From Macrostomum hystrix (Eukaryota; Animalia; Platyhelminthes), in contig CATNEN010000041.1 in the NCBI GenBank assembly GCA_950097015.1, positions 248,001-312,000 on the forward strand: a stretch of 64,000 nt of DNA. The letters are read 5' to 3'. Both the position numbers and the translations under genes were made by a program. Below are positions 27,974-63,580 of the stretch, in pieces; position 1 is the stretch's first letter, and each line of letters starts with the position of its first letter. A model generated the notes under the pieces. The model worked only from the letters and a program-made list of their open reading frames with translations. It had not been told where the DNA came from and made no database searches.

Positions 27974-29648
27974 CCACTCTCAAACCCAACTACCTGCATC
28001 TGTTCCACTCTCAAACCCAGCTACCTGCATCTGTTCCACTCTCAAACCCAACTACCTGCATCTGTTCCACTCTCAAACCCAGCTACCTGCATCTGTTCCA
28101 CTCTCAAACCCAACTACCTGCATCTGTTCCACTCTCAAACCCAGCTACCTGCATCTGTTCCACTCTCAAACCCAGCTACCTGCATCTGTTCCACTCTCAA
28201 ACCCAGCTACCTGCATCTGTTCCACTCTCAAACCCAACTACCTGCATCTGTGCCACTCTCAAACCCAACTACCTGCATTTGTTCCACTCTCAAACCCAGC
28301 TACCTGCATCTGTTCCACTCTCAAACCCAGCTACCTGCATCTGTTCCACTCTCAAACCCAGCTACCTGCATCTGTTCCACTCTCAAACCCAGCTACCTGC
28401 ATCTGTTCCACTCTCAAACCCAACTACCTGCATCTGTTCCACTCTCAAACCCAGCTACCTGCATCTGTTCCACTCTCAAACCCAACTACCTGCATCTGTT
28501 CCACTCTCAAACCCAACTACCTGCATTTGTTCCACTCTCAAACCCAGCTACCTGCATCTGTTCCACTCTCAAACCCAGCTACCTGCATCTGTTCCACTCT
28601 CAAACCCAGCTACCTGCATCTGTTCCACTCTCAAACCCAGCTACCTGCATCTGTTCCACTCTCAAACCCAACTACCTGCATCTGTTCCACTCTCAAACCC
28701 AGCTACCTGCATCTGTTCCACTCTCAAACCCAACTACCTGCATCTGTTCCACTCTCAAACCCAACTACCTGCATCTGTTCCACTCTCAAACCCAGCTACC
28801 TGCATCTGTTCCACTCTCAAATCCAGCTACCTGCATCTGTTCCACTCTCAAACCCAACTACCTGCATCTGTTCCACTCTCAAACCCAGCTACCTGCATCT
28901 GTTCCACTCTCAAACCCAACTACCTGCATCTGTTCCACTCTCAAACCCAACTACCTGCATCTGTGCCACTCTCAAACCCAACTACCTGCATCTGTTCCAC
29001 TCTCAAACCCAACTACCTGCATCTGTTAAACTCTCAAACACAGCTACCTGCATCTGTTCCACTCTCAAACCCAGCTACCTGCATCTGTTCCACTCTCAAA
29101 CCCAGCTACCTGCATCTGTTCCACTCTCAAACCCAACTACCTGCATCTGTTCCACTCTCAAACCCAGCTACCTGCATCTGTTCCACTCTCAAACCCAGCT
29201 ACCTGCATCTGTTCCACTCTCAAACCCAGCTACCTGCATCTGTTCCACTCTCAAACCCAGCTACCTGCATCTGTTCCACTCTCAAACCCAACTACCTGCA
29301 TCTGTTCCACTCTCAAACCCAGCTACCTGCATCTGTTCCACTCTCAAACCCAACTACCTGCATCTGTTCCACTCTCAAACCCAGCTACCTGCATCTGTTC
29401 CACTCTCAAACCCAACTACCTGCATCTGTTCCACTCTCAAACCCAACTACCTGCATCTGTTCCACTCTCAAACCCAGCTACCTGCATCTGTTCCACTCTC
29501 AAACCCAACTACCTGCATCTGTTCCACTCTCAAACCCAGCTACCTGCATCTGTTCCACTCTCAAACCCAACTACCTGCATCTGTTCCACTCTCAAACCCA
29601 ACTACCTGCATCTGTTCCACTCTCAAACCCAACTACCTGCATCTGTGC
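27974..29648. repeat. 31-bp minisatellite (ccactctcaaacccagctacctgcatctgtt), ~54 copies
   Basis: Highly homogeneous array with a main a/g variant; explains three overlapping long ORFs with a 31-aa period. Confidence 0.97.
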
Positions 29649-30279
29649 CAGTGGACCAGCAATAAAGCGAATAGCTCCAGATAAAGCGTTTGGCGCAAAT
29701 ATTATGCAATACTTTGCGTTATATTTTTACTACAATTAACGAACAGAAATAATATATTACAGCATGCTGATGCAGTAATCCTTAATTAGTAATTTCGGCT
29801 TCGACTTGAAGCGACCATTAGTCTGTCAAAGATAAGAGTGTTGTAAATTTTGGTACCCTTAGAGATAACTTTTTGTTTACAAATTTGATTGATTATAGCA
29901 ACTATTGGACATGAAGCAACAAATAACGGTTTCAAAATCCTATTTTTCGTTTGTTGAAATGTGCTTATGTCATAAGAAAAAAATGGTGCAATTTTTATGT
30001 CAAAAGGCGAGTCCAAAGCAAGAAAAAATTGGGAATCGAAATCAATTACTCAAAATTGAACTGAAATTTATCTGCAAAATGTGGGACCTGGTTGCGATTC
30101 GGGTATGAGTACGAGCTGCATGGGGTTAGGGATGCATCCTTAATCCTGATTCGCTCGATAGGAACCGGTTCTAAGGAAAGCATCGCTGAACACTCAGCTT
30201 TTCAGGCTCCGACTCAAACTGGGCGCATCGCGCGGGCGGAAGTTCTAAGGCTGCAGCGGTGCTGAGGGCACCTGTCGCT

Positions 30280-34055: not shown

Positions 34056-37000
34056 CTAGTATTCCGGCTCGTCATACACATTCTCCTCGTTGGCATTCAG
34101 AAATCCCTCTGGCCGGGCCGTCGTACAAATCTCGCAGCCTGGCCGCTCCGGCCGGTTCCGGTAAGTACAAGTCGGGCAGTGCCAGCCGGGCTGTGTGCGG
34201 GCGGGACAGCCGAAAATTATAATTAGAGCAATTTTAACAAAATTCAGTTCTGCGCGCTAATTTGAAAAACCTATATAAAAAAAAACTCTCATGCGGTTGT
34301 TAAAATTGACACCGACACTGCCTTCTGTGACTTGCATAGAATGGAATAATTCCTCAGGTGTAGGAAATTGCAGACATTCTAGCTCGCATTGACGCACCTC
34401 CTGCACTTTCGGTGCCTCTGGCTGCTGCTTCGGCAGAGGCTGCGGCCTCAGCGACTGCTTCTGAGGACGCGGCTCGGCCCAAACTTTCTGAGCGGCAGCG
34501 GCGGCGGCGGCAGCAGCAGCAGAAGCGGTCACGGCGGTGGCGGCATCGGCTGCAGCCTGTGGAAGTCTCTCACGATCCCATCGATAGCGGAAGATGTCCT
34601 TGGTGAGCAGGTAGAGATGGACGACCACCTCATGCTGCTGCTCAAGCTCGCCAAGTGGCGTGTCGTCCGTTGGAATTCGGCCGCAGGCGATGCAGCACTG
34701 CGACTGGCGCGGAATCTCCAGCTCGGCGGCCACGCGCATCTTCAGCTCCGCCACGGTGCTGGCTGTGCTGAATTTGAACAGGCGGGGCTTCTCCAGATCG
34801 CTATCCTTGTCGTGGAAGAACACCTTCACAAGGAGGCCTTCCCCGGACTGCGGGAACACACGGATGGCGCCGCCCTGGCGGCAGAGCTGCCCAACCACCT
34901 GCTTGGCTCCAGCCGAGTCGCCATTGCAGATAGCCTCCTGCAGCCGGCTGGCTAGATCGGCTGGTGATTGCTGGCCCATGGCATGAAGCTGCAATAGATT
35001 GAGGCTGAGTTCACATTAATTTTGTGAGCAGGAACCTTTTGGATTGAATTTGCAATAAACACAATGAATTCACTCATAAATTATTTGGTTATAACTACTT
35101 AAACTATATATTTGTATAATTCAAGTGATCTTGAAATCATTGCTACTGGGTATTCAACTAATAGAAAGAGAAAGTTCATAAACCTGTCATTAAAGTAAAT
35201 GGAACAATAATTTGTATAGAGGTGTCTAAAACTTGTTGCCTGCATATTTTTGTTAAGTGATTAAATTTTAAAGGATATGTTTCTCCCTAAAGTTCAAATA
35301 TTATTAGAACTAAGCCTAAAAATTTCCGACTGAATTCATTATCCTGCATTTAAATGTTTCGTTGATTTATTTTTATTTTCTGGCTTCTGTAGCACCAGCA
35401 TTTGTAGCATAAGCTTATTTGTAACACATTATATATCATGTTATAAGTAAATTGACAGACTGTTTTAAGTCAATAAAATGATAGATAATAACTGCAAAAT
35501 AGAAAGCACATGCTATATGTTTTTATCATATTTTTATATAATATTTTTTAATTATATCATTTATATTATATATATACCGACAGATAATATAATGATACAG
35601 TGAAAAAGTAACAAAAAGCTAAGTAAAAAAGCTAGAGACCAATGAATTTGAGTCATGACATTATGTGTTCTAGGAAGTTTTAAAAAACAAAGCTCTGTAT
35701 CTGTGTATTTGTATTGACTTAAAATAACACCATATCCTTTTGATTGAAAATGATCGAAATCGAAAATATCAAGGTACCAAGTTAAAACTTCACGGTACCC
35801 TCATTTTTCTAAATCAAAATGCGCACACAGAAGAGTTAGTTCTTAAAAAATATTTTATACTTACTATTAAATGCATTAGTTATTACTATTTTTGTTCAAT
35901 TTTCTTTAAAATATATTGTTCTCGTTAGCTTTGTTAGTCTTGTTTACTTCCGCTCAAAAAACGTCTTGAAGTCAAACGTGTTTCACCCTCTAAGCCACCA
36001 GGGTGCACGAATAATGCAATAGGAGTTTAGAAACAATTTGTATAAACTCCACATGAAGACTTATTCTGAATCGAATTTGCCCACCATCATTTACGTGACG
36101 CATGGATCGAATCACACTTGGCATCCTATTGTACTTCTACGATTAATTTAGTTTTTCCCTTCTGCCAATAAATTTATTTTGTAATTAAATAAAGAAAGTC
36201 TGCATAGGACGGTTAGGTTACCTCGCTAGAGGTCGTCTGGTTGCCAGGGGATAGCGAAATGGGCGGCTCCTCAGCTGCATCCACTCGGCCAGTGCGCCCT
36301 GCAGCTATAAGTCAAGATGGATTTATTTAGGGTTTGCCGGGGCTTATGCTGTTTCGTCGCAGGCGCCGGTCAATCATCTGAAGGATTTGCGTTATAATTA
36401 CCAAAATAAGGTGTCAGGAGTCAGGTTGGGTTGCATCCAACAGTCTAAGTCTAAACAGTTAAAGCAATTAGTTCTGAGCATGTTGGTCGCTCAGCAAAGT
36501 TTTAGTCAAGCGTAACGTACTTGGGAGCATCCATCGGCATGTACTCCTTGCGTATATAAACACACATGCATAAGATTGTCGTTGCAAAGAAATTTATTTT
36601 CATCATCATCATTTCTTCATCATCTCTGCTCGCTGATCTCTTATTCTCTATCCTTTCCTCCATCCTGATTGGTCGCTGTTCTCCCCAATGCTATGCGTAA
36701 TCGTATTGTGTATTGTGTGTGTATTGTGTATATTATGTATTGCGTTAAGTTATGCGTATGCGTAATAATCTAATGCTAATAAAAAAATAATTATAATGAG
36801 GCCAAAATTTGTACTCGTAGCATAATTTATTTTACTGTCAATTGGGGCATAACCCCTTAGTGTTACGAGTGTTACTATACCGCCTACTTCAAGTAGCTCG
36901 TACAATGCCGCGTTCGCTCCACGGCTCGTCACAGCTATCATGATAATTTCTCTCTAAAAGGCGGCCAGCAACTAGGCCAGCAAGTAAATGCCACTCCCTA

Positions 37001-43973: not shown

Positions 43974-45377
43974 ATGTATCGCCAAGCTACACGCGTAAGC
44001 TACTTAGTAGTGCAGCAACAGCACCTGCTAGCTTTGACTCTGCTGCTGCTATGGGCCAGCCTAGCAACTGCCGCGCCAGACAAATGCAGCGTCTGTAACA
44101 AGCTGACCGAGGCATTCGAGAACGGCCTGCAGCGTACGGCCAAGGACAACTTCGGCGGCGGAAACACGCACTGGGAGGAGAGCCGGCTGGGCAGCTGGGC
44201 GCACAGCGAGACCCGGCTGGTTGACATCCAGGTTGCATAATCTCATTTTTTCAATGCCAATACCAAGTCACAGGATATATTCACAATCATACGATCCCGA
44301 TTATCTAAACCAAATCCCAGAATAAATTATGTCAGTCTTAGGATCCCAATGCTCATTCTCAGAATCCTCTACGATCCCGATTCCTGATCCTAGAAACTAG
44401 ACAGATCCGATCACTCTACTTATGAATACTGCATGGCAGTAGTAGTATGGTAGGAACATACATTCTGATTTCCACAGGAGCGGCTTTGCCAGGGCGAAGG
44501 CAAGGAGGAGACGGCTGTATGCCACGCCCTGTTGGAGCAGTTCGAGGAGGCCCTCGAGGCCTGGTGGTTCGGCGATTTCCGTCGCGATCCAGCCGGCTCA
44601 TCAGCCGTAGCCGCCGCCACCCTGCGCAGCCTTCTTTGCGTGGATCGAGGCCAGCTCTGCTGCCCGCATGGCTCCTTTGGGCCGAAGTGTGCGGCCTGCC
44701 CCGCCTGCGGTCTGCGCGGTGACTGCGACGGCAACGGCACCCGATCAGGCAGCGGTCGTTGCAACTGCCACGTCGGCTACGGGGGCGATCTGTGCGACAA
44801 GTGCGATGCGGGCCGCTACCTGGCCGACAGCTCGCCGCTCTGCCTCGCCTGCCATCCGGCCTGCGGACCTGCCGGCTGCGTAGCTGGCTCCGGCGTCAGC
44901 GACTGCCGCGACTGCGCCGCTGGCTACGAGCCCAGTGCCGACACCACTGCCTCCGATGCCGACGGTCGAGTCACCTGCATTGACGTGGACGAGTGCGCAT
45001 CCGTTACCAGCCCGTGCTCTGGGCCGCACGAGACCTGCGTGAACTCTCCCGGCAGCTTCGCCTGCCACTGCTTGTCTGGCTATCGGCGACCTGCGGCTGG
45101 TGGCGACTGCGAGCCGGAACCTGCGGAGACTCCCCGCCGTGATTCCGTGGAAACTCCAAGTGTAGATTTCACGGAGACTCCCAGCGGCGATTCCGTGGAA
45201 ACTCCAAGTGTAGATTCCACGGAGACTCCCAGCGGCGATTCCGCGGAAACTCTCAATGGGGATTCCACGGAGTCGACAGCCCCAGAGGAAAGGGGTGAGT
45301 TTGAATTGCACAAATTCCTAGGTAGTGAAGATGTGCTCGTTAAGTCCTACTTATTTAATATTTCAGACGAGTTGTGA
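43974..45377 (+). CDS. CRELD2: CRELD (cysteine-rich with EGF-like domains), soluble ER-type (CRELD2-like), ~361 aa; exons 43974-44231, 44478-45294, 45367-45377
   Basis: Signal peptide; CSVC motif; RTAKDNFGGGNTHWEESRLGSWAHSETRL (CRELD hallmark); CCPHGSFGPKC and laminin/EGF/furin-like repeats; calcium-binding EGF CIDVDEC...CVNSPGSFAC; no TM segment; the spliced C-terminus is RDEL. Confidence 0.93.
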
Positions 45378-45844
45378 CAGCCGTTGAACCTGAGCTAGGC
45401 GCAGACATGGAGCTGGGGCTGGCTGTGCCTGCAGATTTATAGTGCCAATTCATGGACTGATTTGTGTTCGCGAATCGCCTTGAGAACATTTTTTCTCTTT
45501 CGTTAACTTGACTTCATTAGCGAACCGCAGGATTAAAGTACATTGTGCGCTTTCCTCCCCATTGGTTTTTCAACTGTTGCTGTGCTGTTATGCCATTTGC
45601 TTTTGCCTCTTCGGTCGCCGCTCTTCTTAATTGTCTCGTCTGATTGCTTTCTGCAGCATTTTATCTTTTCAAATACAAATCAAATAATTAATTGTGAGTG
45701 CCGCTGTTGATTGCGCCGGCTGTGGACATCTGACTGAATTACTGCACTGCATGGATGGCCATGTTCTGGTATTACTTTCTCAAAAAACGTTTTCTCAAAA
45801 CTTTACATTGGTTCTTTATTTAATCATTCTGCTTATGAATGTCA

Positions 45845-46260
45845 CCTGTGAATGGGGTTTCACTGAATGGGGTTCATTTGAACCAGGGTGTTTCACTGAA
45901 TGGGGTTCATTTGAACCAGGGTGTTTCACTGAATGGGGTTCATTTGAACCAGGGTGTTTCACTGAATGGGGTTCATTTGAACCAGGGTGTTTCACTGAAT
46001 GGGGTGCATTTGAACCAGGGGTTTCACTGAATGGGGTTCATTTGAACCAGGGGTTTCACTGAATGGGGTGCATTTGAACCAGGGGTTTCACTGAATGGGG
46101 TTCATTTGAACCAGGGGTTTCAGCGAATGGGGTGCATTTGAACCAGGGGATTTCACTGAATGGGGTGCATTTGAACCAGGGGATTTCAGTGAATGGGGTG
46201 CATTTGAACCAGGGGATTTGAGTGAATGGGGTGCATTTGAACCAGGGGTTTCACTGAATT
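45845..46260. repeat. 33-bp minisatellite (tgtttcactgaatggggttcatttgaaccaggg), ~12 copies
   Basis: Tandem array; explains the FTEWGSFEPGC ORFs. Confidence 0.93.
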
Positions 46261-46705
46261 TTAGTGAATGAGGCTAATTTGAACCATATAAACAATAAAG
46301 AACCGAGCAATGTAATGACATTTTACTGGCAGTTATATTTATAAATTTGCATTCTTATATATTTCTTTTATTTCAGGTGAAATATAGTTGTCTTTTCTTC
46401 TAATTAAAATCCATTTACACTGAAAGCAGAAAAGCTGGGTCAAACACATTTTGCTAATTATGAAAAGTAACTGTAGAGATAACTGGAGTAACAGTTAAAT
46501 AAAACCAAATCCAAAGCTTTGTGCCAGCAACAATGCGTCGGAACACGCATTGCCAGATATTCCCTCATTTGCTTTATAAAAAGAGTAATAAAACAGCTAA
46601 GCAGTGCACTTTTTACACGCCTCAAATTGTAAAGAAAGCCACCCAAAACGCCTTGGGCCAGGAGATTAATTATCTACACACTCAAGCAGCTCTGGTCGCA
46701 GCAGA

Positions 46706-48058
46706 CTAGGCCAGGAGGTCCTCCGCGCCAATGCTGCACAGAGCCTGCTGAATAAGACCGCTGAAGCCTGGCTCGTGGGCCAGGCTCGTGATCAGGGACT
46801 CAATCGGCTTCTCCGACATCCTGGCCAGAGTCACCGTGTCTGCGTGGCTGCGGGTGAAGGCCTCAACGAAAGCCAATTCCTTGCCACGCTGGGTGAGGCT
46901 CCGGACGAGGTGCTGCTGCTCTTCGGTGGACAGGCTGCGGACCGGCGCCGGAGTGGCGGCCGCCGACTGTTGCTGAAGCTCGCCAGTGGTGCCCATGCCG
47001 CTGTCCACCGTGCGCACCGGCGGGCCTTGCGTCATCCATGGCGCGGCCTCTCCAGCTGCAGCCGCCTCCGGCTCCGGTGGATCAGAGCCAGCAGCAGCAG
47101 CCAGGCCGTCAGCCACGCCCTCGCGGAACAGCTCAGTAAGCTCCGGACTTCCTGTTGCCGCAGCCATTTCAGCGACGGTGACGCCTTCGCTGTCCTCCTC
47201 CAACGGGTCGGCGCCGTTGTCAAGGAGGAATCGAGCTGCTCGAACCGCGCCGGCATTCACTGCTGACATCAGCGGCGTCCAGCGATTGCCGCGGTGCTGC
47301 CTCTCGTCAAGGTTGACGTTGATGCCAGTGTCGGTTGCGAAATCCAACAGCAGGCTCAGCATGTCAGTCCGGTCTCGAGTCGCCATCAGGTGAAGCACCG
47401 TGTCTCCAGCACGGTCATTCATGTGGATGGCGGCAGCTACCTGGCCTGCCACAAGCCTGCCCTCCTCGATCAGAGTCCTTGTTATTCTCAGTCCGGCTTC
47501 GAGGACCTCAACAGACTCCTCCTGTGCGCAGTGGTGCAGGAAGTTTCGGCCGTTGTTGTCGTACAGTCGGTGAAGCTGAGTCGGCTCTCTGACCAGCAGG
47601 CGCTCCATCAACTTCTCAGCTGAGCTGCCACTCGATGTGCTCAGCATGAGCATGGTTTCCCTACTCTGCGAACGGTCGTCAAGAGCCTCGGGATTTCGGC
47701 TAGCCGCAATGTCCAACAGCTTCTCGGCCCGCTCGCCCTGCTGCCGCAACAGAGCAGACGCCACGGGATTGTCGCCGTCGCTGTTGCGAACTCTCAGCCT
47801 GTCGGAGCTGCTGTTAAACACCTGCAAGAGAATTTCTTCACAGTTGGCGCCCTCGCTGTACTGGTGAATTGCAGTGGCCAGAATGCGCGGATAGTCTAGC
47901 AGCAGGCGTCGCTGAATCGCCTGTGGCAGAGCGCGGAACTTCAGGGACTCGGGCGTCTCGCCCTGGGCTTCAGAATCCAGGTTCAGCTGCTGCATCCGGC
48001 CCTCCAAGCTGGCAGGCTGCTGCCTGGTCTTGCTACTTCGAGGTGACTGGCCTTGCAT
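46706..48058 (-). CDS. Ankyrin-repeat protein with C-terminal death-fold-like module (family member 2), intronless, 450 aa
   Basis: Ankyrin motifs NSDGDNPVASAL, DNNGRNFLHHCA, DRAGDTVLHLMA, WTPLMSAVNAGAVRAARFLLDNGADP, EGVTVAEMAAATG. The linker contains VDSGMGT and is followed by a helical ~75-aa C-terminal domain. Confidence 0.88.
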   Translation of the reverse strand: MQGQSPRSSKTRQQPASLEGRMQQLNLDSEAQGETPESLKFRALPQAIQRRLLLDYPRILATAIHQYSEGANCEEILLQVFNSSSDRLRVRNSDGDNPVASALLRQQGERAEKLLDIAASRNPEALDDRSQSRETMLMLSTSSGSSAEKLMERLLVREPTQLHRLYDNNGRNFLHHCAQEESVEVLEAGLRITRTLIEEGRLVAGQVAAAIHMNDRAGDTVLHLMATRDRTDMLSLLLDFATDTGINVNLDERQHRGNRWTPLMSAVNAGAVRAARFLLDNGADPLEEDSEGVTVAEMAAATGSPELTELFREGVADGLAAAAGSDPPEPEAAAAGEAAPWMTQGPPVRTVDSGMGTTGELQQQSAAATPAPVRSLSTEEQQHLVRSLTQRGKELAFVEAFTRSHADTVTLARMSEKPIESLITSLAHEPGFSGLIQQALCSIGAEDLLA

Positions 48059-49539
48059 TGTGCTGAAAGTATTTTAGAAATGAAAAGCTCATGATATTGA
48101 GTATGCAGCTTAAACTGAACTTGATGTTTTTCATTTGAATTTAGGGTATAAAAAGTAGACTAGAGACATTTTATATTGAACAATAGCCAACAAGGAAATC
48201 AATTAGTAATTATCAATTAGCTTTAAAAAAGCTTTATCCAAAGGTTCTATATTCAGATTCTTGGTCTACATAGGCCACACAATTGGTAATACCATTGACA
48301 TTGTAATGTTTATGACCTTTCCTAAGATTATAAGTTGATGTATTATCAATTCTAGCTACAGGGGCCTACCTATAAATATTAACAACCAACCAACCAATAG
48401 CTAGCTAACCTACTTGTTTCAGATATAAAAATAATTTAATTGAAAGTGAAAATGACTGTATTTACTTTTTCAGATAATAAACTGTTAAGATAAGCTAGAA
48501 GTTATATTTTCTAATGAGTTTAATAGTTAGCTACAGTACTATTTCAATACACTATAGCTACATATAGTTATCACAATGTAAGGCTGAAAGTTTTTTCCCA
48601 GAACTATTTCCCAAATGTTATAGGAAGTACTATGCAACTGATTTATAATATTGCTAATTGCTAACATCAAGAATCATTGCAAAAATATTTTTATACTAGT
48701 AAAGTATCTACTAACCTAGTTACATGCTGAAATGTAAGTATCTATCAAGATTCAAGAAAGCTTGGGCCTAGCTATGACTAGCATAAATATGGGCCAGAGG
48801 AAATCTGCATTTGCAGAGGCCATAGGCTCTTAATAATATATAGATTGGAGCTTGTTCCTAATTATTTAATAGCTACTTGATAATTATAAATGTAAGATTT
48901 GATACATAGTTTAATAAGCTATAAAAACTGTTTTTAAGAGACAAGTAAAAAACTACAGTTTGCTCAGGTTTTCCTGTGTGTGTGCTGTGTGCTAGGCTTA
49001 GTTTGTAAGTGTAAGCTAAGCCTAGTACCTACAGTCATGAGTTAGCTACTTAAACTGTGAATAAACTAATAATTAGGCCTAAAAACTAATGTTCACTTAT
49101 TGCTTCGTTTTGTTTTTCGTCTGTTATATTATCTTCTTTTTTGTGACACCAATTACCAATAACTTAAAAAAATAATTTACTTATAACAATAATTACTTAG
49201 CATAGATTCATAGAACAAGGTACTAAAAATGGCACAGAGCTTTTAATCTACAGCAGTGTGTACGACTCCGCGGTCAGTCCGCGGCCAGTCCGTGGCAAGT
49301 CCGTGGAACGTTTTAAGTTAATTTTCTCGCCCCGGCAATTCCGCGGAAAATCCACAAAATTGATGCTTTTCTAACAAGGCCATTTGTGAATTTTGCGTGT
49401 TTTAATTTATTTATTTAAATGTCCCCAATTTATTTAGGCCTAGTTATGTGTGAGGCAGCGAAGAAATGAAGAACGGAGCACTGGGTTAGAAGGTTGAAAA
49501 AACTCGAGCCCTCCAAGGGCCTTGCGCACTAATATATAT

Positions 49540-52230
49540 TTTAGTCAGTCAGAGAAAACAACAATTACCCCCTATCCCGGCATAGACTGGTTTGGACAGA
49601 CCGACCCCCAGCCAATCAAAAAGCGCCACGCGCACTCTAAGGCGGCATGTAAGCCGCATACACAGCATCACCCCCTTCGAAAGCAAAAGGGGATTAACGG
49701 ATGGGGAAAACAACAGTCCATTGGTGCGCAAATTCAACAGTTCATTAACTTCATTTGCAAATTGCATATCAACTCGGGCTGAACCGACTTGGCGGTCTCC
49801 GGACCCGGCTGCCTCGCCTAGGCTGTGGCAGCGGCCTCTCGTTGCCCGGCGGCCTCACCGGTGGCTCCGGCAATGGTGTCGGCGCCATCAGTGTGCCGAG
49901 TCCAACGTCGGACGCGTCACTGGTCCGCCGCTGGTGTACTGGGTACGCTGTCCAGGTTATCGGAGTGCCATCGCGAGCCGTCTTCGAGCAGCCAGGACTC
50001 GGGGCCCAGCCGACGAATGATTTGCCGAACGTCGCCCAGCCATGTCGCAGCTTGTGAGCAGTCTGTGGCCGGCGGACGCGCACAGTGTCGCCAGCCTGCA
50101 GTCGTGAAGGTCGGGCGCCTCGACGACAATCGGTGGCTAGCCTGGCCTTCTCCTTGTTGGCTTGGTCTCGTCGCTCCGTGGCCTCCGCTGATGTCGCTTT
50201 CGATGTCGGCTGGCGGATGCCTCGGCTCCACTTGTTGAGTGGCCCTCGGAGCGGCCGGCTGATCATCAGCTCTCCAGGCGTCAGGCCCGTGGTCGCATTC
50301 GCCGTTGACCGGTAGCACTGCAGAAACTCGCGGAGCGCCTTCTTGAAGCTAATGCCGACCTTGAGATGGGCCTTCAACGACTCCTTCAGCGTACGGTTGA
50401 GCCGCTCGACATTCGAGTTCGACTGCGGATGGTACAGCGAAGTCTTGATGTGCTTCACGCCTTGGCCGGCCAGGAACTCCTCGAATGCGTGGCTGGTGAA
50501 CTGGGGCCCGTTGTTGTTGTTGTTGGCGTACGGATCCCTCGCTAGGCATATGGGGGGCAGCGCGCCGTCGCCTCGATGAAGATCCGCACCCGATTCTCTT
50601 GATTCTCTCTCCCTGTGGGTCCTCCCACAGGAGGGACATTGAGCCAGAAGAATGGAGGATGTTGCGGCGTTGATCGGCCCACCTGGGGCAGTCGAGCAGG
50701 AAGTTCCGCGTGTCCTCCTGGGGAGCGTTGCAGTGGGGGGCAAGACGCAGCGGGTACCTTGCCCCAGCGGTGTAGGGTAGCTTGCAGGAAAGGCGCGCGG
50801 TTCGCCGAGTTGGAACAGCGCCACCTCCGCCGCACGAGGCCAGGCATGGCCGACCTGCAGCCGCTTGCCACCGCTGAGTCGATGTGGATGGTCCAGAGGG
50901 ACTAGGTATTCGAATGCTCGGTACGTTGTCGGTCATAATCTTGGATGGCAGCTCTCTTCGACGTTCCTCCTCCCCGCTCTCTATTTTTGGTTGCTTTAGA
51001 GTTTTTACTAGTTTTTGTTTCATTTTGCCTTTTTTTGTCGTTCTTCTTCCGTCTTCTGTTTTGGTGTTCTTAGCCTGTTCGCTCTTCTTCTCCTCTGTTG
51101 TCCGGTTGAACTTACTGTTGTTTTTGGAGATGCTCGGTTTAGTCACTTCCGGGCCGCTCCGTTGAAGGAAGGTTTGCCTACAGAACCCAGTTGTTACTCT
51201 GAGTCTATAGGCCTCTCCCCCCAACTTCTTCTTTGCCAGCCTGGTCCAGGCCGCTCGGCACTGTCGCGGAAGTGAGAAATCTTGGCCTGGCAAACTGTAG
51301 ACACCTCGAATGGCTCATTGTCGTCATCGTCATCCTTGACGGTGCGGACCTTACGTCGCTGTCGGCAACATGACTTGAAATGACCGACCCGGTGGCAGTG
51401 CAGGCAGGACTTGTCCTTCGCTGGACACTCAATGCGCAGGTGGCATGCCCAGCCAATCCGCAGTTGCCGCATCGCGCGTCCGAGCTAGATTTCTGCGGCA
51501 TCGCATGCTTGGGACCCTTGCGTGGCGGACGCTGGCTGATCTTCTGGATGCGGGACTCCTGCTCCTTGTCGCTCTTGCCGTCGCGCAGGTTCTTGGCGTC
51601 GTTGATGGCGGATTCGACTTGAATCGCTAGGGCTGTGGCTGTCTCCAGCTCGAGCACCTTCTCCATGAGCAGTCGCTCTCTGATGCGTGGCGAATGGGTC
51701 TTCTCTATGATCTGGTCCCTGATCATCTGGTCTTGAAGAGCGCCGTATTCGCAGTCTGCTGCGAGTTCGCAAAGGGCGTCAACGAACTGGCTGATCGGCT
51801 CGCCAGACATCTGGGCGCGTGACTTAAATCTGTAGCGGTTGCTGATGGTGCTATGCGACTCGCCGAAGATCGTCTTCAGCTCTTTCACCAGCTTTGCTCC
51901 TGAAAATCTTTCACCAGTCAAAGGTGCCGACGTTTGCCGTTGGCAGATTCCTCAGCGCGTAGATTCGCTGGCCCTCCTCGCCAAGCAGATGGATGAGTAT
52001 CGCCTTCTTGCGTGCGTCCGATGCTTCGTTAAGGTCCAAGGCCTCCAGGTAGATCTTGAATCCTTCGATCCAACGATTCCAAGGCGTGTGTGGCTGTCCT
52101 GGGTAGGCGAGAAACACGCGTGGCACGGAAATGCTCAGGCTCGTCACCATGTTATGTGTACACAACAGTATCCGTATCTGTAAGTGAATGACAGCAAGCG
52201 AATCGTATTTCCCTCACTGAAGCTGGATAG
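49540..52230 (-). mobile_element. Decayed, internally deleted Ty3/Gypsy LTR retrotransposon (gag + integrase C-half)
   Basis: Gag motifs WNRWIEGFKIYLEA...KKAILIHLLGEEG, RYRFKSRAQMSGEPISQFV..L..LAADCEYG..QDQMIRDQII and zinc knuckles (CxxC..GH). Integrase NGPQFTSHAFEEFL...YHPQSNSNVERLNRTLK. PBS-like tggtgacgag (52149-52140) follows CA, and PPT-like aagggggtga (49677-49668) precedes TG. Protease, RT and RNase H are absent, and the two LTR remnants could not be aligned to each other. Confidence 0.9.
50510..51200 (-). mobile_element. Non-LTR retrotransposon (LINE) remnant nested in the Gypsy element
   Basis: Across frameshifts it reads EVALFQL.ANRAPFLQATLHRWGKVPAASCPHCNAPQEDTRNFLLDCPRW (ORF2 C-terminal CCHC region). 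It ends in an (aac)5 tail that abuts the integrase NGPQF. The 5' boundary is approximate. Confidence 0.7.
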
Positions 52231-52289
52231 GATAGCTGTGGGGAAGTGAAACAAACACAAATTTACGTATGAAATATAGGAGTTTTTTA

Positions 52290-52575
52290 ACTCCATCGGG
52301 CCAGATGTGCAGCCGACAGCGCAGCCGTAGCTATTGCGCATGGACTGAATGCTGCGTACGGCTGTTCAGTCAATGGACTGGGGGGGGACGCCACGCCCAC
52401 CCTCAATTACTCCAACTGCTGCTGGTGCCCATCCCGTTTAACAGATGGGTGAACTGAAGCAATGCAGAGATGTATCTAATTGCTAAAGGACACAAATTGT
52501 TTCTGTGGAGTTGTAAGTGCCTCACGACCTTAAAGTCGTAAGTCCGACGCTCTAGCCACAAGGCTACAACCCCCT
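52290..52575 (-). mobile_element. tRNA-derived SINE, family B, copy 2
   Basis: The reverse complement begins gggggttgtagccttgtggctagagcgtcggacttacgact (tRNA-like) and contains cttcagttcacccatctgttaaacgggatgggcacc (CORE-domain-like) and ccccagtccattgactgaacag, shared with 33090-33170. Confidence 0.7.
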
Positions 52576-53570
52576 TCCACCTATAAGAGTGGAAGGACAA
52601 ATGCAACGTTTTCAGAAAAATTTTGTGAGTCTTGTTTTCACCAAAAGATTGAGATTGGAATTTTTTACATGAAAATTAAAAGATCATTGAATGGTTTTGT
52701 TTTTCATTTTCATCATTTTTGTAAGCTGATCTATAAAGCTCTTATTAGCATATGATGTACCTTACATGTTGCTTCCAGGAATTTCACACAGCTTTATTTC
52801 TGAAAACCTTATCTTCGTGTTTTTTCACTACTAGGCCTTTATTAATAACAGTGACAGGGCTTAAACAATAAACGAGTCATAAGGCTTGAATTCCATATTC
52901 ATAAATGTATTTGATAATTGATCAGATTATCAAATTAGAGAAAACAAATAGCTTGTTTCTTAGTGGTTTTGTTGTTTCAGGAGCATAGGTATTTTACACC
53001 GCACACGGGACAGCATGTAGAGAAGCGGAAAATGGATATGAAACCTTTGACAGAAAGCTTTTAAAGCTTGACAGAAATCGATGAAGAAAGCTAATATCAA
53101 AATATGAGCCCTTAATCCGCTTCCAAACAAAAACTGTCACTAAATTTGTGCAGATAAACTGAAAACCTCTTGTCCCCGCAGCGCATTTTTAGGCGAAAGC
53201 AGCCTCCTAAACTCTAGAGTTTTAAGTTTCCTGTCCCTCAACTCCCAGTCTCTAGTCAGTGAGCGTCTGCACAATGTTGATTTCAGCCCAATCTGGAACT
53301 GCAAGCGCGCACTGCTGTATGCAGACACTGTCCAATGCCTGACAAGTAAGAAGCGAATTCGTAAGATCTAAAAATAGAAACGTTCTCCACCCGCGGATTG
53401 TTCACGGCGAGCCCAGCTAACTAAATTGCTAGAAACTATTTCGCATGTAACCCGCGACCCTGCATTTCATATAAATACTGCAGAGCCTCAAGACGAAATC
53501 AAACGCAAGGCGAGATCCATCAAAGAGTTTTTATGACACAAAAAGTCCTTTAAAACTTAAACTCGAGCAA

Positions 53571-54860
53571 ATGAATCTTCAAATGCAGCAGCTGAACCTA
53601 GATTCTGAAGCCCAGGGCGAGACGCCCGAGTCCCTGAGGTTCCGCGCTCTGCCACAGGCGATTCAGCGACGCCTGCTGCTAGACTATCCGCGCATTCTGG
53701 CCACTGCAATTCACCAGTACAGCGAGGGCGCCAACTGTGAAGAAATTCTCTTGCAGGCGTTTAACAGCAGCTCCGACAGGCTGAGAGTTCGCAACAGCGA
53801 CGGCGACAATCCCGTGGCGTCTGCTCTGTTGCGGCAGCAGGGCGAGCGGGCCGAGAAGCTGTTGGACATTGCGGCTAGTCAAAATCCCGAGGCTCTTGAC
53901 GACCGCTCGCAGAGTAGGGAAACCATGCTCATGCTGAGCACATCGAGTGGCAGCTCAGCTGAGAATTTGATGGAGCGCCTGCTGGTCAGAGAGCCGACTC
54001 AGCTTCACCGACTGTACGACAACAACGGCCGAAACTTCCTGCACCACTGCGCACTGGAGGAGTCTGTTGAGGTCCTCGAAGCCGGACTGAGAATAACAAG
54101 GACTCTGATCGAGGAGGGCAGGCTTGTGGCAGGCCAGGTAGCTGCCGCCATCCACATGAATGACCGTGCTGGAGACACGGTGCTTCACCTGATGGCGACT
54201 CGAGACCGGACTGACATGCTGAGCCTGCTGTTGGATTTCGCAACCAACACTGGCATCAACGTCAACCTTGACGAGAGGCAACACCGCGGCAATCGCTGGA
54301 CGCCGCTGATGTCAGCAGTGAATGCCGGCGCGGTTCAAGCAGCTCGATTCCTCCTTGACAACGGCGCCGACCCGTTGGAGGAGGACAGCGAAGGCTCCAG
54401 TGGCGAGGATCTGTCTCTCAGCAGACTCGAGAATGAAGAGTCCGCTGTTGAGATGGACTTTGAGGAGCAGCAGGACCCCATTACTCAAAGCACTGTTGTT
54501 CCTGCAGTGATGGCAAGCTTCAGAATCGAATCATGGATGAAGCCCGTGAACTCGGTCGACAGTGGTGTGGCCTCTGTACCCAGTGTGCTCGACAACATCC
54601 CTACAGCTCTGCCTTTACTGGACGAGGAATATTCAGCAGAGGAAATGGCCGAGCTGGAAATTCGATTGCTGCACAGTGGACAAACTCAGGACTTCCTTGC
54701 CAAACTGATTCGCCAAGACGAACAGCTGAGCGATGTAGGTCTGGCTGGAATGTCTGACAAGCCGGTTAGTGCTGCCTTCAGCATCTGGGCGGCTCAAGGA
54801 GTTCAAGTTAGACGGCTAGTCGTGCTGGCGGCTCTTAAGGAACTTTATGAAAGCCCATGA
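53571..54860 (+). CDS. Ankyrin-repeat protein with C-terminal death-fold-like module (family member 3), intronless, 429 aa
   Basis: Residues 5-275 are near-identical to member 2. The linker contains VDSGVAS. The C-terminal helical domain YSAEEMAELEIRLLHSG...MSDKPVSAAFSIWAAQG is homologous to, but diverged from, that of member 2. Confidence 0.88.
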   Translation: MNLQMQQLNLDSEAQGETPESLRFRALPQAIQRRLLLDYPRILATAIHQYSEGANCEEILLQAFNSSSDRLRVRNSDGDNPVASALLRQQGERAEKLLDIAASQNPEALDDRSQSRETMLMLSTSSGSSAENLMERLLVREPTQLHRLYDNNGRNFLHHCALEESVEVLEAGLRITRTLIEEGRLVAGQVAAAIHMNDRAGDTVLHLMATRDRTDMLSLLLDFATNTGINVNLDERQHRGNRWTPLMSAVNAGAVQAARFLLDNGADPLEEDSEGSSGEDLSLSRLENEESAVEMDFEEQQDPITQSTVVPAVMASFRIESWMKPVNSVDSGVASVPSVLDNIPTALPLLDEEYSAEEMAELEIRLLHSGQTQDFLAKLIRQDEQLSDVGLAGMSDKPVSAAFSIWAAQGVQVRRLVVLAALKELYESP

Positions 54861-56086
54861 AGTACAGGAAAAACTGCGCTGCTGTACAGGAACTCATACT
54901 TCAATTGAATCATAACTGTTGCATCATGTGCATATGTGCCATGAATTGGTTCGCATGTTCTGTTCCATTCCATCGCACTTTAATGTAGATTTAAAGTAAA
55001 TTCACATTTGGATTAAATTTTATTTGGATAACTTGGCCAGTTTGGCAAATATTGAAGCTGCATCGTTTTGTGATATTGAAACTCGCAACTTTTTTAACTT
55101 CTGGTTGCAAAAGTTGTAGGCAATAACAAACTCATGGAACCGAGATAATAAAATATGTTTACATTTCTCACTAAATTTCACTAAACATAAATTCAGCGAG
55201 TTGTTTGAGAACCCGTTCATTTTGGAATGTACATTTTAGCTTTTAAGCTTTGCTGATCTTTCGCCCCTTTCAAAGCTGTAGGCCATTGATTTTATTTAAA
55301 TGAAAGCTAATTAATGTAGGGTTTAAGTTTGATGTAAATTGCCGATAAACTGCAGGCATGACGATCTAGCCTATAAGCCTACGCCTAGTAACATACAAAT
55401 AATAGAAACATTACAACGCGAATGAGCAATGTCCACTATACTATACGTTAAATGCCTTGCGAGTATTAAATGCCTTACGTTGTGCCCGCTGCCTACCCAC
55501 TTCCTACCCACTACCTATCCGCTTGCCTACCCACTGTCTAGGCTTAGTGAGCCCACTGCTAAAATTCGTGAGTCAATACCGTTCAATGCTACTCACCAAC
55601 AGTCAATAGCAAGTCAGTAGCATTTTGCTAAGCTAAAAAGCAGCAAAATTAGCGTTTGCACACCCCATAGCTTCTTCCATTTCCTAAGCTCCGCAACTGG
55701 CCCAGCCAATAGAGTCCACTCCATCTCACCTTGTCTCCCCACCCCTCCGCCAGCTCTGCCCTAGCGTACACAATTCGCCTCACCCACTCCTTACCACCCA
55801 AACTTTTGAGTATGAGCCGCATGCGAGTGGAAGCGTCTGCGTACATTGAATCACCCGCACTACTTCTCGTAGGGCAGAGAGTGAATGAGGCGTGTACAGT
55901 GCGGGCGCCCACTTTCACATGCAGGTGTTAAGGCGAGCGAGAGCAAGAAGGCTAAAGAGTTGAGATAGAGGGAGAGAGTGGCGAGCCAGTGCGCCAGATT
56001 GGCTGCTCGCAGTCTTTCCACCTGGGCCCATTCGAGTTTCTGCGTCTCGCGCTTACCTGCCATGTCATTGGCGCCGCGCGAACAGC

Positions 56087-57372
56087 ATGGCTTCCAGACG
56101 GAATAACCACGCTGCGGACAGCGATGGCAGTGACATACTGGACGGCGAGGATCCCAGTATCGAGGACTGCAGCTGCTCCGACAGCTCGCTGGAGTCCGGT
56201 AAGGCAGTCTTGGAAGATCCGATGCTGGTGGGGAGAATTTGTATGGGATAAGATACGCAGGCTCCTTAGTGTTTAAAGACTACCGCTTTTCTTAATTTTA
56301 TTATCAGCCATAGAGCCCAACGACGGCAGCTTCAGTCTGCATGTCTTTTCAAAGGATTTCGCCAGCTCTCCGGTGTACCGAGCCATTGTCAGCTGCAGTC
56401 TGTCTGCGCTGTACCACGCCATCTACTGTCAGCAGCAGTCTGTCACACTCACCGACTCCAACTTCGGCGTGAACTTTCTGCACTTGGTGGCATCCACAGC
56501 GGAGCACCAGACAGAGACCGCCTTCGAGCCGTTCATCTACGCCCTCTCGAATCACCACGTGGACCCAAGCGCCGAGGACGCCAGTGGCGACACCCCTTTG
56601 CGTCGCGCTCTGCGTCGGCGCCTTCCCCTATTAACGCGAGCCCTCCTGCGCTGCGGTGCCCGCCAGGAACCGTCGGCCGACTTTGCTGCTCTAGTCGATT
56701 CTGCTGAAGAGGCTGCTACCACCGAAGATGAGGAAGCACGTTCAGCGGCGGAGGCTGCGCGCAGCGCATACGAAGAGTTTCCTCCAGGCGGACTGTGGGC
56801 CGCCGTTAAGGTAGGCCCGACTGTCCGTGATTTTCGTCGATTTATATGTCCCCTAATCCTGTTCCGATCCACTGCAGGCAAGCGACTATTTCCTGGTGGA
56901 TCGGCTGCTGGGCTGCTGGTTTCGAGTCCGCATCACCCGCACTGACGGAGAGAGCCTCATCAGCTTCGCCCGCCATGTCGGTGCCGGCAGCCTGATTGTG
57001 GACCTGCTGGAGGGCAGCCGCGCCACACTCGAGTTCGTGCACGCCACTCTGGCTGGTGACACTCGAAAGATGGTACAGCTGCTGGCCAACCGCAACGTCA
57101 ACGCCGAGATCCGCGATCGCGGCCACCGGTCTGACAGTTTAACTGCGGGGACTGCGGGGTCGGCGGTGGCGGCTGGGGCAGCAGCGGCGATGCCTTCTAG
57201 CAGGCCGAGGTCGCTGCGTGAGACGGCAACAGCCATGGGCCATCGGCGCCGGGTGCTGAAGCTGCTGCCGCCTGACCGTGGACCGCCGACGGCCAACGGG
57301 CGAAGGGGCGGGCCCGCAACTGCCGGACGGGCCGGTCGGCCGACAACATCCACGGTCTGTGGCGTGATGTAA
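56087..57372 (+). CDS. Ankyrin-repeat protein of a different subfamily; exons 56087-56198, 56314-56810, 56878-57372
   Basis: Phase-consistent GT-AG introns (68-115 nt); motifs GVNFLHLVA, DASGDTPLRRAL...ALLRCGA, GGLWAAVKASDYFLVDRLLGCWFRV, DGESLISFA, SLRETATAMGHRRRVLKLL. Confidence 0.78.
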
Positions 57373-62191: not shown

Positions 62192-63580
62192 ATGGCGCTG
62201 TTCCAAGATCCGGGCTCCGGGCGACCGTTGGATGGCATCAAATTCGAAATCGACAGCGACAGCGCCAGCGACGAGGACGACGATGTCCCGACGCCATGCC
62301 AGACGCCGACTGGCGAAGAGGCAGCAGCTGAACGTCGGCGAGGCCTTCTTAGCCGCATCGCCTTCCTGGAGGCCGAGGCAGAGAAGCTCATGGAGCACAG
62401 CCGCGGCTGCCTTGGCCACGCCGCCGAGATGCAGTCTCTGCTGGCCAGGCTGGACGACCAGAAGGCCGCCCTGCAGCGACTGCTCGGCACCGAGAACGCT
62501 GGTCCAGAGCTCGATCCCTGGGACGAGCCGTGCGATTTGACGGAGCACACGGCGCGCACCTACCTGCTGTGGCTGCGGCGACTTTTGCATGATCTGTCCC
62601 AGGCGGTGGACCAGTCCGCCAGCGGCAGCGCCACCGCCGCCCCATCCTCCTCCGGCGGGTCGCGGCTGAGCGGCCGGCGTCGTCGAGACGCGCCCAATCG
62701 AATTTTTCCGAACCTCGAGGCGCTTGACATCGCTGCCGTCGCGAACGACGCTGGCGACGTGTTTTACCGGCCCAGTGAGGAGGGCGACCTAAGAGACTTC
62801 GCACCGGTCGAGCCCGGCTGGGAGCCGCTGCCACGCCAGACTCTGTACTGCGTGGTCGGCGACGGCCGTCAGGTAGCCGTCGTCGCGCTCGGCGGCGAGA
62901 TTCTGGCGCGGGCGCGACTGACGGGCGGAAGCGAAGCGGACCAGGCGGCCGATAAGGACGCCGGCGTTGGACGCAACCTGGAACGCATTAACTACCTCCG
63001 CTGCTCTGGGCGCCTGCTGTTCTCGGACTACCAGAGCCTCTACATCTGCGACCGCTGCTGCCGCGTAATGCGCAGCCTTCACGGCTTCAGCTGGATGGTC
63101 GGGCACTGCATCGACGAGCCAGCTGACCGGCTGTATATTGTCGACCGCGTCAACGAGTTTGTCTCCGTGTACGGCCTGGCCAGCCTGGAAGAGCGCGGCC
63201 GCCTCGCCCACCGGGACTTTACCGACGGCATCAGCTCGGTGTGCACCCTGGCGCAGACTCTGTTCGTCTCCGACCGCGGTGCCAACGCCATCTTTGCGTT
63301 CAGTGTGGACTCACTCGAACTGGCCTTCCGGGTGCCGCTGCGCAACCCGCTGTTCGTCACTACGGACTGGTCCGCCTGCCTGTACGTGACCGTGGGCGGC
63401 AGGGACAACACCGTCCGGATCCTTGACACTCAGGGTCAGCTGCGCCGGTCACTCTCCGGCGGTCGCGGCTCGCAGCCTGGACAGTTCGGCTCGCCAGGTG
63501 GCCTCACCGTCTCCCTGGACGGCGCCGAGCTATTCGTGTGCGACCTGGACAACCGGCGCGTCCAGGTGTTTCGCCTGTGA
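62192..63580 (+). CDS. NHL-repeat (beta-propeller) protein with N-terminal coiled coil, single exon, 462 aa
   Basis: Coiled-coil LLSRIAFLEAEAEKLMEH...LLARLDDQKAALQRLL; C-terminal repeats LYIVDRVNEFVSVY, LFVSDRGANAIFAF and GSQPGQFGSPGGLTVSLDGAELFVCDLDNRRVQVF (canonical NHL). Confidence 0.88.
   Translation: MALFQDPGSGRPLDGIKFEIDSDSASDEDDDVPTPCQTPTGEEAAAERRRGLLSRIAFLEAEAEKLMEHSRGCLGHAAEMQSLLARLDDQKAALQRLLGTENAGPELDPWDEPCDLTEHTARTYLLWLRRLLHDLSQAVDQSASGSATAAPSSSGGSRLSGRRRRDAPNRIFPNLEALDIAAVANDAGDVFYRPSEEGDLRDFAPVEPGWEPLPRQTLYCVVGDGRQVAVVALGGEILARARLTGGSEADQAADKDAGVGRNLERINYLRCSGRLLFSDYQSLYICDRCCRVMRSLHGFSWMVGHCIDEPADRLYIVDRVNEFVSVYGLASLEERGRLAHRDFTDGISSVCTLAQTLFVSDRGANAIFAFSVDSLELAFRVPLRNPLFVTTDWSACLYVTVGGRDNTVRILDTQGQLRRSLSGGRGSQPGQFGSPGGLTVSLDGAELFVCDLDNRRVQVFRL

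Follow-up and report, generated by a model that had tools for sequence, protein, structure and literature searches.

How do two neighboring genes come to share an almost identical front part while the rest of their coding sequences can barely be aligned? The question is raised by a 64-kb window (64,000 nucleotides, to which all positions here refer) of the Macrostomum hystrix genome. In an ungapped comparison on the reverse complement, positions 47183 to 47995 of the minus strand (arm A) and 53583 to 54395 of the plus strand (arm B) differed at 11 of 813 positions, with no indels, which corresponds to 98.65% identity. Nei-Gojobori counting divided these mismatches into 4.0 synonymous and 7.0 nonsynonymous differences, identical to the count of a first-pass annotation of this DNA. 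Each arm spans 813 bp, or 271 codons, and covers essentially the whole ankyrin domain; both start with ATGCAGCAG and end with GACAGCGAAGGC. The third-position GC content (GC3) is 0.72 in arm A and 0.70 in arm B, compared to 0.53 in B's own tail. A repeat search recovered the same pair as an inverted repeat (47162-47995 and 53583-54416) that is 97% complementary, with 5587 nt between its arms, and found no further inverted repeats of at least 40 nt between 44 and 58 kb of the window.

The tract ends abruptly on both sides. The 300 nt 5' of the two arms are 22% identical, which is the random level, and on the 3' side identity is 39% over the first 100 nt and random further on, so the sharp borders and unalignable flanks described in the first-pass annotation are real. 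The 3' border lies inside the last ankyrin repeat, which A continues as VTVAEMAAATGSPELTELF and of which B keeps a diverged remnant, SSGEDLSLSRLENEE. We also considered splicing or trans-splicing as the cause of the border at the ATG and dropped it, as neither gene has an AG directly upstream.

The arms belong to two intact open reading frames arranged head to head, for which the only Pfam matches are ankyrin families. Gene A (46706..48058, minus strand) encodes 450 amino acids in what reads as a single exon, with an ankyrin solenoid, a linker containing the motif DSGMGT, and a predicted A-type death-fold tail; the ATG at 47995 (MQQL) is the first of its start codons to be conserved. Gene B (53571..54860, plus strand) encodes 429 amino acids, with the same solenoid minus the last half repeat, an acidic linker containing DSGVAS, and a predicted B-type death-fold tail. 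Weak homology between the two tails at the protein level, which had been noticed by eye, was recovered by both BLASTP and MAFFT (W..V..DSG, followed by LS.EE..L..G..F..LA.MS(E/D)KP). The 5.6-kb spacer between the two heads contains degraded remnants of an LTR retroelement (49769..51921, minus strand), with gag-like and integrase-like reading frames and weak Pfam matches to PNMA/gag and rve_3, and no counterpart of these remnants was found in the Macrostomum lignano loci L001 to L003.

The only relatives of A and B that we found are hypothetical proteins of the sister species M. lignano. In a full-length word search, coverage exceeded 38% only in proteins of this species, and an exhaustive HMMER search of 1.84 billion representatives with a profile of the tails matched M. 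lignano proteins only. The annotator had not recognized the system as described, and we likewise found nothing in the literature on these genes or on a Macrostomum IkB, and no database name other than "hypothetical protein." By these sequence searches, A and B belong to a small, new protein family that is restricted to Macrostomum. Its members have an ankyrin solenoid of about 270 amino acids, a predicted disordered, partly acidic linker with DSG(V/M)x(S/T), and a predicted C-terminal death-fold domain of about 75 amino acids. The ortholog of A is M. lignano P0001, which has kept its place beside an EGF_CA gene, and that of B is P0002 (L002 4373-5716). Synteny with M. lignano is retained in the order EGF, A, B, gene Y, NHL; B alone is flipped, and the flanks are collinear. 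In M. lignano, loci L001 to L003 carry B and then A in tandem, and L003 also has a third copy (1171-2529), a mosaic gene with a B-type upstream part and an A-type tail, of the kind of mixed ankyrin-tail combination that the first-pass annotation had suggested looking for. A third paralog, P0014, is unlinked and has a B-like tail; its ankyrin part is just 51 to 53% identical to those of A and B.

The comparison between species showed that the two parts of these genes have different histories. Within the ankyrin tract, dS and dN between A and B are 0.021 and 0.011 in M. hystrix and 0.010 and 0 in M. lignano, compared to 0.76 to 0.84 and 0.13 between the species, so paralogs within a species are closer to each other than orthologs are between species, synonymous sites included. 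In M. lignano, the three copies of the locus have all been homogenized. In the tails, computed separately, dN is 0.46 between A orthologs and 0.55 between B orthologs, compared to 0.80 to 1.0 across types, where dS is saturated (at least 1.9). Maximum likelihood trees reflect the same difference: the ankyrin parts of each species fall together, whereas the tails cluster according to type, the M. lignano A-type joining A and the B-type joining B, each with a bootstrap of 100. With P0014 added, the tail tree reads A | (B,C), with a bootstrap of 99. The first-pass annotation had proposed, from M. hystrix alone, that A and B are old paralogs whose ankyrin part was recently homogenized by gene conversion or swapped by recombination. 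The sorting of tails by type across two species and the saturated dS between types support their age, and the low dS within each genome and the grouping of ankyrin parts by species support the recent homogenization. The contrast in dS, the tail tree, and the diverged ankyrin part of P0014 together give strong support to gene conversion.

Thus, we consider it probable (about 0.8) that A and B are old paralogs whose ankyrin part has been homogenized recurrently and independently in both species, mainly by interlocus gene conversion, while their death-fold tails were kept. The duplication into A-type and B-type genes would have preceded the split of M. hystrix from M. lignano. Since then, nonallelic homologous recombination, mainly interlocus gene conversion, would have copied the ankyrin-coding part of one linked gene over that of the other again and again, independently in each lineage. 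In every case the tract begins at one conserved ATG, since the DNA upstream of it is unrelated; beyond its 3' end, the tails would be too diverged for conversion and probably also protected by selection. The pair is head to head in M. hystrix because B was inverted in one or the other lineage, as judged from its orientation in the two species, and conversion would also act across inverted arms. In formal terms, a small number of larger recombination events would be indistinguishable from repeated conversion.

The phenomenon is of a known kind, and it is the protein family that is new. Partial gene conversion has classic examples in primate gamma-globins, RHD/RHCE, opsins, and MHC genes. As in classic interlocus conversion, the copies here are closely linked and are nearly identical within a species over a sharply bounded tract, while the flanks keep an older orthologous signal; conversion is seen in both tandem (M. 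lignano) and inverted (M. hystrix) pairs. This case differs from the classic ones in that the tract takes in one complete protein domain, beginning at the start codon and ending in the last ankyrin repeat, that homogenization limited to this domain is independent in two species across a change of orientation, and that the unlinked paralog P0014 provides an unconverted control. Two species, both gene orientations, a polyploid genome with three copies of the locus, and such a control make the family a clean natural experiment in concerted evolution limited to one domain, and show to what extent the two domains of a single gene can be given separate histories by recombination. There is a warning as well: trees of the A/B family based on the ankyrin part would be wrong.

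AlphaFold (AF2) models of the A-type domain (46709..46939, minus strand; residues 374-450; pLDDT 90 to 95, six helices) and of the B-type domain (54633..54851, plus strand; residues 355-427; pLDDT 82 to 91) are compact six-helix bundles, and their structural matches span the whole domain. When the A tail was compared by VIA-align with 48,161 PDB representatives, the best 50 matches were almost all CARD, DD, DED, or PYD domains (69 to 84 residues aligned) at Z scores of 8.1 to 6.2, a range (6 to 8) that by the tool's own warning may reflect a common helical arrangement, and for models built from an alignment of five sequences. The highest identity among these matches was to the death domain of NF-kB p100 (23% over 79 residues). 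For the B tail, the best 25 matches were all death-fold domains, with Z scores of 6.6 to 4.6. At the level of the fold, and with moderate Z scores, both tails are thus predicted to be death-fold domains, of a subclass (DD, CARD, or DED) that the fold search is unable to tell apart; the first-pass annotation had called them so from the letters alone. Sequence searches missed the fold: none of the five tails matched Pfam Death, CARD, DED, or PYD at an E value of 10 or lower, the matches obtained (HTH_22, LETM1) being due to chance, and a PDB profile search with the tails found no death-fold chain at that threshold. That PDB search returned CHMP1a (E value of 0.007) and NAT10, both of which we judged spurious. 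In the ESM Atlas, a feature search with the whole protein led to generic ankyrin (with or without SAM) clusters and one with the tail to SAM-like and unrelated clusters at scores of 0.82 or lower, while a fold search returned just bacterial entries with a TM score below 0.45. A reading of the tail as a SAM domain was dropped, since the unbiased search of PDB structures gave death-fold domains and no SAM domain.

The linker that joins the two domains carries a second feature of interest. The D-S-G of DSGMGT (46988..47005, minus strand) in A and of DSGVAS (54558..54575, plus strand) in B is invariant in all five aligned tails and in P0014, that is, in all three paralog types, with the variants DSGVAS, DSGVSS, DSGVQS, DSGMGT, and DSGMCT across types and both species. 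Both motifs lie in linkers predicted to be disordered (pLDDT is below 50 around DSGMGT). DSGVAS fits the DSG-hydrophobic-x-S consensus exactly, and DSG(V/M)x(S/T) is a candidate beta-TrCP-type phosphodegron, as a short motif that matches a consensus.

We infer from this architecture that A and B, with their alternative death-fold ends, are cytoplasmic signaling adaptors or inhibitors that could be degraded upon a signal. Both proteins would use the same ankyrin surface to bind a single partner, each type of end would engage its own death-fold partners, and phosphorylation would expose the proteins to degradation through the DSG motif. Of the earlier idea of one input wired to two outputs, the shared ankyrin part and the two tails are observed, and the role in signaling is suggested by the architecture. 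Ankyrin repeats followed by a C-terminal death domain are already known from p100/p105, ANKDD1, ankyrins, and DAPK1. ANKDD1A, ANKDD1B, ankyrins, and DAPK1 resemble A and B in this order of domains and in soluble products of about 450 to 520 amino acids, whereas the linker motif and the N-terminal segment (TPESLRFRALPQAIQRRLLLDYP...) are specific to the A/B family, and neither the tail profile (1.84 billion representatives) nor the full-length word search detected homology to ANKDD1 beyond the domain types.

A and B are possibly IkB/p100-like. Such a reading, a functional refinement that is compatible with gene conversion, would make them flatworm counterparts of IkB or of the C-terminal half of NF-kB p100/p105, encoded as stand-alone genes and holding divergent Macrostomum Rel-homology proteins inactive until phosphorylation triggers their degradation. 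With p100/p105 and IkB they share the ankyrin solenoid, the acidic region, and the DSG-type beta-TrCP degron consensus (DSG-hydrophobic-x-S/T), and with p100/p105 the death fold; the p100 and p105 death domains were among the best structural matches of the tails, and the p100 ankyrin domain was matched at an E value of 1e-6 (rank 21). Planarians, in which divergent RHD genes only are reported and IkB is not mentioned (PMC13563047), fit the same picture. However, the ankyrin part has no preference for IkB or p100, since Ankyrin-1/2, NOMPC, DARPins, tankyrase, and TRPA1 rank higher, and IkB-alpha/beta and Bcl-3 were absent from its best 60 PDB matches in single-sequence and profile searches; the ankyrin profile gave generic ankyrin matches only, which do not place the family. 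The tail lacks sequence similarity to any death domain in the Pfam, PDB, and tail-profile searches, the structure search does not separate DD from CARD or DED, the candidate degron lies between the ankyrin part and the death fold instead of after the death domain as in p105/p100, and, unlike p100/p105, the A and B genes have no Rel-homology domain. On balance, we regard this reading as possible but doubtful. A fuller version is slightly more tentative still: A and B, perhaps with C, would be the missing flatworm IkB-type inhibitor, in which conversion keeps a Rel-binding ankyrin surface identical in the linked copies, the death-fold ends connect one cargo to different death-fold signaling hubs, and kinase input leads to its release through the DSG motif. 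As a further part of this reading, a crossover between the head-to-head arms would exchange the promoters of the two tails. To our knowledge, canonical NF-kB and IkB components are hard to find in the flatworm phylum. The family is expressed and uncharacterized and appears to join three hallmarks of innate-immune or NF-kB-type systems (ankyrin scaffold, degron-like motif, and death fold), so its members are candidates for functional work in M. lignano, a transgenic model.

For the history of the pair, the closest competitor to recurrent conversion is that, in each species, one recent domain swap, or one unequal crossover, placed a single ankyrin segment on an older tail. One event per species would be enough for a dS of 0.01 to 0.02, and M. 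lignano does contain a crossover-type product, the extra mosaic copy, with B-upstream satellite DNA on both sides. Nevertheless, a single swap is improbable. All three comparisons place the 5' border at the same ATG, but the 3' ends differ (+813 in M. hystrix, +864 and +1332 in M. lignano), which makes at least three independent tracts, and the differing ends among the M. lignano locus copies support conversion indirectly; homogenization extends to each of the three M. lignano locus copies, and both species reached the same state independently despite a dS of about 0.8 between them. In addition, a crossover in an inverted pair would invert the spacer and not transfer sequence, so conversion is needed in the window itself.

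We also weighed an assembly artifact, in which a collapsed or chimeric repeat or a misoriented contig created them. The inversion of B is present in this assembly only, and short-read contigs break at the tract: those mapped on gene B were built with k = 31 and stop 30 nt inside the 3' border, leaving the 3' junctions unbridged. In runs X1, X3, and X5, the 11 variable sites show seeming mosaics, which are uninterpretable given how bubbles are handled at k = 31, with no phasing beyond 31 nt. The arms are not one collapsed copy, because 11 sites differ between them. A DNA contig of run X1 spans 53000 to 53630 and links the unique DNA upstream of B with the tract, including the B-specific base at 53600; both continuations of the tract were found in contigs of four runs from three studies; and both types of ankyrin-tail junction are kept in the independent assembly of another species. 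RNA-type contigs contain the A leader and the A tail, and in run X3 a contig terminates at 55227 in a nontemplated A18 tail, which marks the poly(A) end of gene B and shows that B is transcribed. An artifact is thus very improbable. Finally, a recent duplication of the whole gene, after which the tails alone diverged very rapidly, is an account for which the tail dN/dS of about 0.5 between A orthologs (0.17 for the ankyrin part) could be cited. It is refuted by the tail tree, with tail types common to both species; the saturated dS between the types and upstream DNA that is unrelated right up to the ATG also speak against it.

Genes A (46706-48058, minus strand) and B (53571-54860, plus strand) are intact, divergently oriented ORFs of 450 and 429 aa, respectively. 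The first-pass annotation had claimed that they share an 813-bp near-identical tract, and we recovered this tract at 47183-47995 on the minus strand and 53583-54395 on the plus strand as a gapless alignment with 11 mismatches (98.65% identity), its identity running from ATGCAGCAG to GACAGCGAAGGC. Nei-Gojobori counting gave the same numbers of synonymous (4) and nonsynonymous (7) differences as had been counted by eye. The borders also proved to be as sharp as claimed: the 300 nt upstream of the arms are only 22% identical, which is random, and downstream there is 39% identity over the first 100 nt and random identity beyond. In a repeat search of 44 to 58 kb, the sole inverted repeat of at least 40 nt had arms at 47162-47995 and 53583-54416, which are 97% complementary at a spacing of 5587 nt. 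Pfam searches of the A and B proteins returned ankyrin families alone, and PDB sequence searches matched tract residues 40-159 to TRPA1 repeats and residues 139-271 to ankyrin or DARPin repeats. These matches indicate that the 271-codon tract is mostly ankyrin-like.

Using a word-based protein search, we found full-length relatives in M. lignano alone, namely, P0001 (63% identity) and P0002 (61%), both annotated "hypothetical protein." Alignment placed an A-type tail (the C-terminal part beyond the tract) in P0001 and a B-type tail in P0002, and the ankyrin parts of the two are identical in protein sequence. An exhaustive HMMER search of 1.84 billion representative proteins with a tail profile built from five sequences returned P0002, P0014, and nothing else. 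P0014 (Mlig006948, 412 aa), the third paralog in M. lignano, carries a C-type tail, and its gene stands alone, with an acetyl-CoA synthetase gene on one side and an MFS transporter gene on the other. Within the reach of sequence-based detection, the family is restricted to Macrostomum.

An independent sequence check was made with Logan contigs (k = 31) over a single stretch, on gene B. A DNA contig from run X1 covers 53000-53630 and joins the unique upstream DNA of B to the tract, and its base at 53600 is the one specific to B. The k = 31 contigs end at the 3' border of the tract, in the 30-nt overlap that a repeat would produce, leaving the B junction unbridged; continuations into both tails, A and B, were found in 4 runs from 3 studies. 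Coverage in run X3 was limited to 53583-55227 and terminated in 18 non-templated A's, showing that gene B yields a polyadenylated mRNA with a 3' untranslated region of 367 nt. Contigs for the A leader and A tail were present in the same RNA-like runs. That an assembly chimera created the two ankyrin-tail junctions is argued against, the stronger counter-argument being that both junction types are kept in the assembly of the other species.

Between A and B, the ankyrin tract has a dS of 0.021 and a dN of 0.011 in the window genome and values of 0.010 and 0, respectively, in M. lignano, while between species its dS is 0.76 to 0.84 and its dN is 0.13. In the tails, dS is 0.85 (dN, 0.46) for the A orthologs, saturated (dN, 0.55) for the B orthologs, and saturated at 1.9 or more (dN, 0.80 to 1.0) across types. 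Maximum-likelihood trees conflict, with the ankyrin part grouping by species and the tails by type (bootstrap, 100 each). The dS contrast between tract and tails and these incongruent trees support the earlier proposal of old paralogs with a recently homogenised ankyrin part. When the C-type tail is included, the tail tree separates A from a B-C group (bootstrap, 99), and the C-type ankyrin part is 51 to 53% identical to those of A and B, which are 97 to 100% identical to each other within a species; thus, had homogenisation not occurred, the expected divergence between A and B would be about that of either from C. Nucleotide-level purifying selection as the cause of the tract identity is ruled out by the incongruent trees and the C-type comparison, and a recent whole-gene duplication is ruled out by the same trees and the diverged C-type ankyrin part. 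With both excluded, recombinational homogenisation remains, and these comparisons show, at the level of sequence, that the ankyrin part of the linked pair was homogenised by recombination independently in each species. Gene conversion that affects only part of two linked paralogs is well known; what is new here is that the homogenisation is unusually clean, domain-precise, and twice replicated, across a changed gene orientation.

The tract of identity in M. lignano begins, like that in the window, at the corresponding ATG (MQQL), and its 3' end lies at +864 in one copy of the pair locus (L002) and at +1332, the whole coding sequence plus 12 nt, in the extra copy within another (L003). The fixed 5' border would reflect unrelated upstream DNA stopping heteroduplex extension, and the variable 3' borders would reflect separate, independent events. 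A mosaic ankyrin-tail combination, as the first-pass annotation predicted, is found in this extra L003 copy, a third gene of that locus (1171-2529), where a B-type upstream region and leader are joined to an A-type tail. Satellite-rich B-upstream sequence lies on both flanks of this copy, which suggests an origin by unequal crossing-over within a duplicated unit. Every M. lignano B-type gene is preceded by a long satellite array (L002, about 2200-4000; L003, 1-820 and 2537-3996). Tract GC3 is 0.70 to 0.72 in the window and 0.81 to 0.82 in M. lignano, equal to that of the A-type tail (0.74 and 0.86, respectively) and above that of the B-type tail (0.53 and 0.64) in both species, a pattern that fits either A usually acting as donor or a GC bias in conversion.

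In all three M. lignano copies of the pair locus (L001-L003), B and then A stand in tandem on one strand, adjoining an EGF_CA gene. The window order of EGF gene, A, B, gene Y, and NHL gene is as in M. lignano, and orientations are kept except that B is inverted. The EGF_CA-domain gene is at 44532-45377 (plus strand), and its ortholog adjoins the A-type gene in M. lignano also. Gene Y, the conserved neighbour 3' of B (56307-57307, plus strand), is apparently multi-exon, with translated segments 75 to 84% identical to L001 4909-6100, and has a weak ankyrin match (E = 0.09). The NHL-repeat protein gene (62192-63580, plus strand) has its syntenic counterpart in the NHL gene that terminates locus L001. 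In the spacer between the heads of A and B are decayed LTR-retroelement pieces (49769-51921, minus strand), with ORFs that are gag-like with a zinc knuckle and integrase-core-like; the M. lignano spacer has no counterpart of these pieces, which may be associated with the B inversion. In L001 of M. lignano (contig NIVC01001583), a frameshift near 16332 interrupts the A-type copy (15646-17060), reflecting either an error in the assembly or a homeolog in decay. The end of the EGF_CA gene contains 24-bp tandem repeats (45124-45267; 8 aa, ETPSxDSx-like), and a 33-bp tandem-repeat array of at least 8 copies in two blocks (45821-46292) lies between this gene and the 3' end of A.

Sequence methods (Pfam and PDB sequence searches) found no known domain in the tails. 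In AlphaFold2 models made on five-sequence alignments, the first 35 to 40 tail residues are predicted to be disordered and hold a conserved W...V..DSG block, followed by a six-helix bundle in the A tail (residues 40-116; pLDDT, 90 to 95) and a helical bundle in the B tail (residues 41-113; pLDDT, 82 to 91). The top Foldseek rows were death domains of p75NTR, UNC5H2, TRADD, and p100, with weak E-values. With VIA-align, which is independent of Foldseek, a comparison to 48,161 PDB representatives gave CARD, DD, DED, or PYD structures for nearly all of the best 50 A-tail matches (Z, 8.1 to 6.2; rmsd, 2.1 to 3.4 Å for most; 69 to 84 residues aligned) and death-fold domains for 25 of the best 25 B-tail matches (Z, 6.6 to 4.6), these Z values being moderate and the tool cautioning on helical bundles. 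The highest identity to the A tail was that of the NF-kB p100 death domain (23% over 79 residues). Despite the moderate Z values, the near-exclusive match lists and full-domain coverage favour the death fold claimed in the first-pass annotation, and the best-supported reading of the models is that the tails adopt it, a call made at the level of the fold and not of the subfamily (DD, CARD, or DED).

The D-S-G motif is invariant in all tails; the next position is V or M, the one after it is free, and the third is S or T (DSGVAS in B and DSGMGT in A of the window genome; DSGVSS, DSGVQS, and DSGMCT in M. lignano B, C, and A, respectively). The motif sits in a disordered linker that is otherwise unalignable. 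DSG-hydrophobic-x-S is a degron bound by beta-TrCP once phosphorylated, as in IkB-alpha, p105, and beta-catenin, and the motif of this family matches it as a candidate beta-TrCP-type degron. Proteins combining ankyrin repeats and death domains are already known; new here is an uncharacterised Macrostomum-restricted family with predicted cryptic death-fold tails and a conserved degron-like motif.

Between species, the ankyrin part is under purifying selection (dN/dS of about 0.17), and the death-fold tails are fast-evolving (dN/dS of about 0.5). Judging from architecture, the shared ankyrin surface, which has stayed identical between the linked copies, would engage a partner common to them, the alternative death-fold ends would link it to different death-fold partners, and the DSG motif would permit signal-dependent destruction. 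We consider it possible, though unlikely, that the family is a stand-alone inhibitor, resembling IkB or the p100 C terminus, of divergent flatworm Rel proteins: a SHARPIN-like gene lies about 10 kb from the pair, but the ankyrin part shows no particular closeness to IkB proteins, and the domains come in another order than in p100/p105. Also in favour of such an inhibitor, the RHD genes of planarians are all divergent, in a paper that does not mention IkB (PMC13563047). In the SHARPIN-like ORF (34257-34994, minus strand), a ubiquitin-like domain was matched at E = 2e-5 and the LUBAC-tethering motif (LTM) weakly, at E = 0.0024. Elsewhere in the window, two 2-kb bins (8001-10000 and 28001-30000) have an extreme GC skew of about -0.6; they overlap long ORFs at 8905-10071 and 27939-29684 and probably represent coding sequence that is repetitive or of low complexity.
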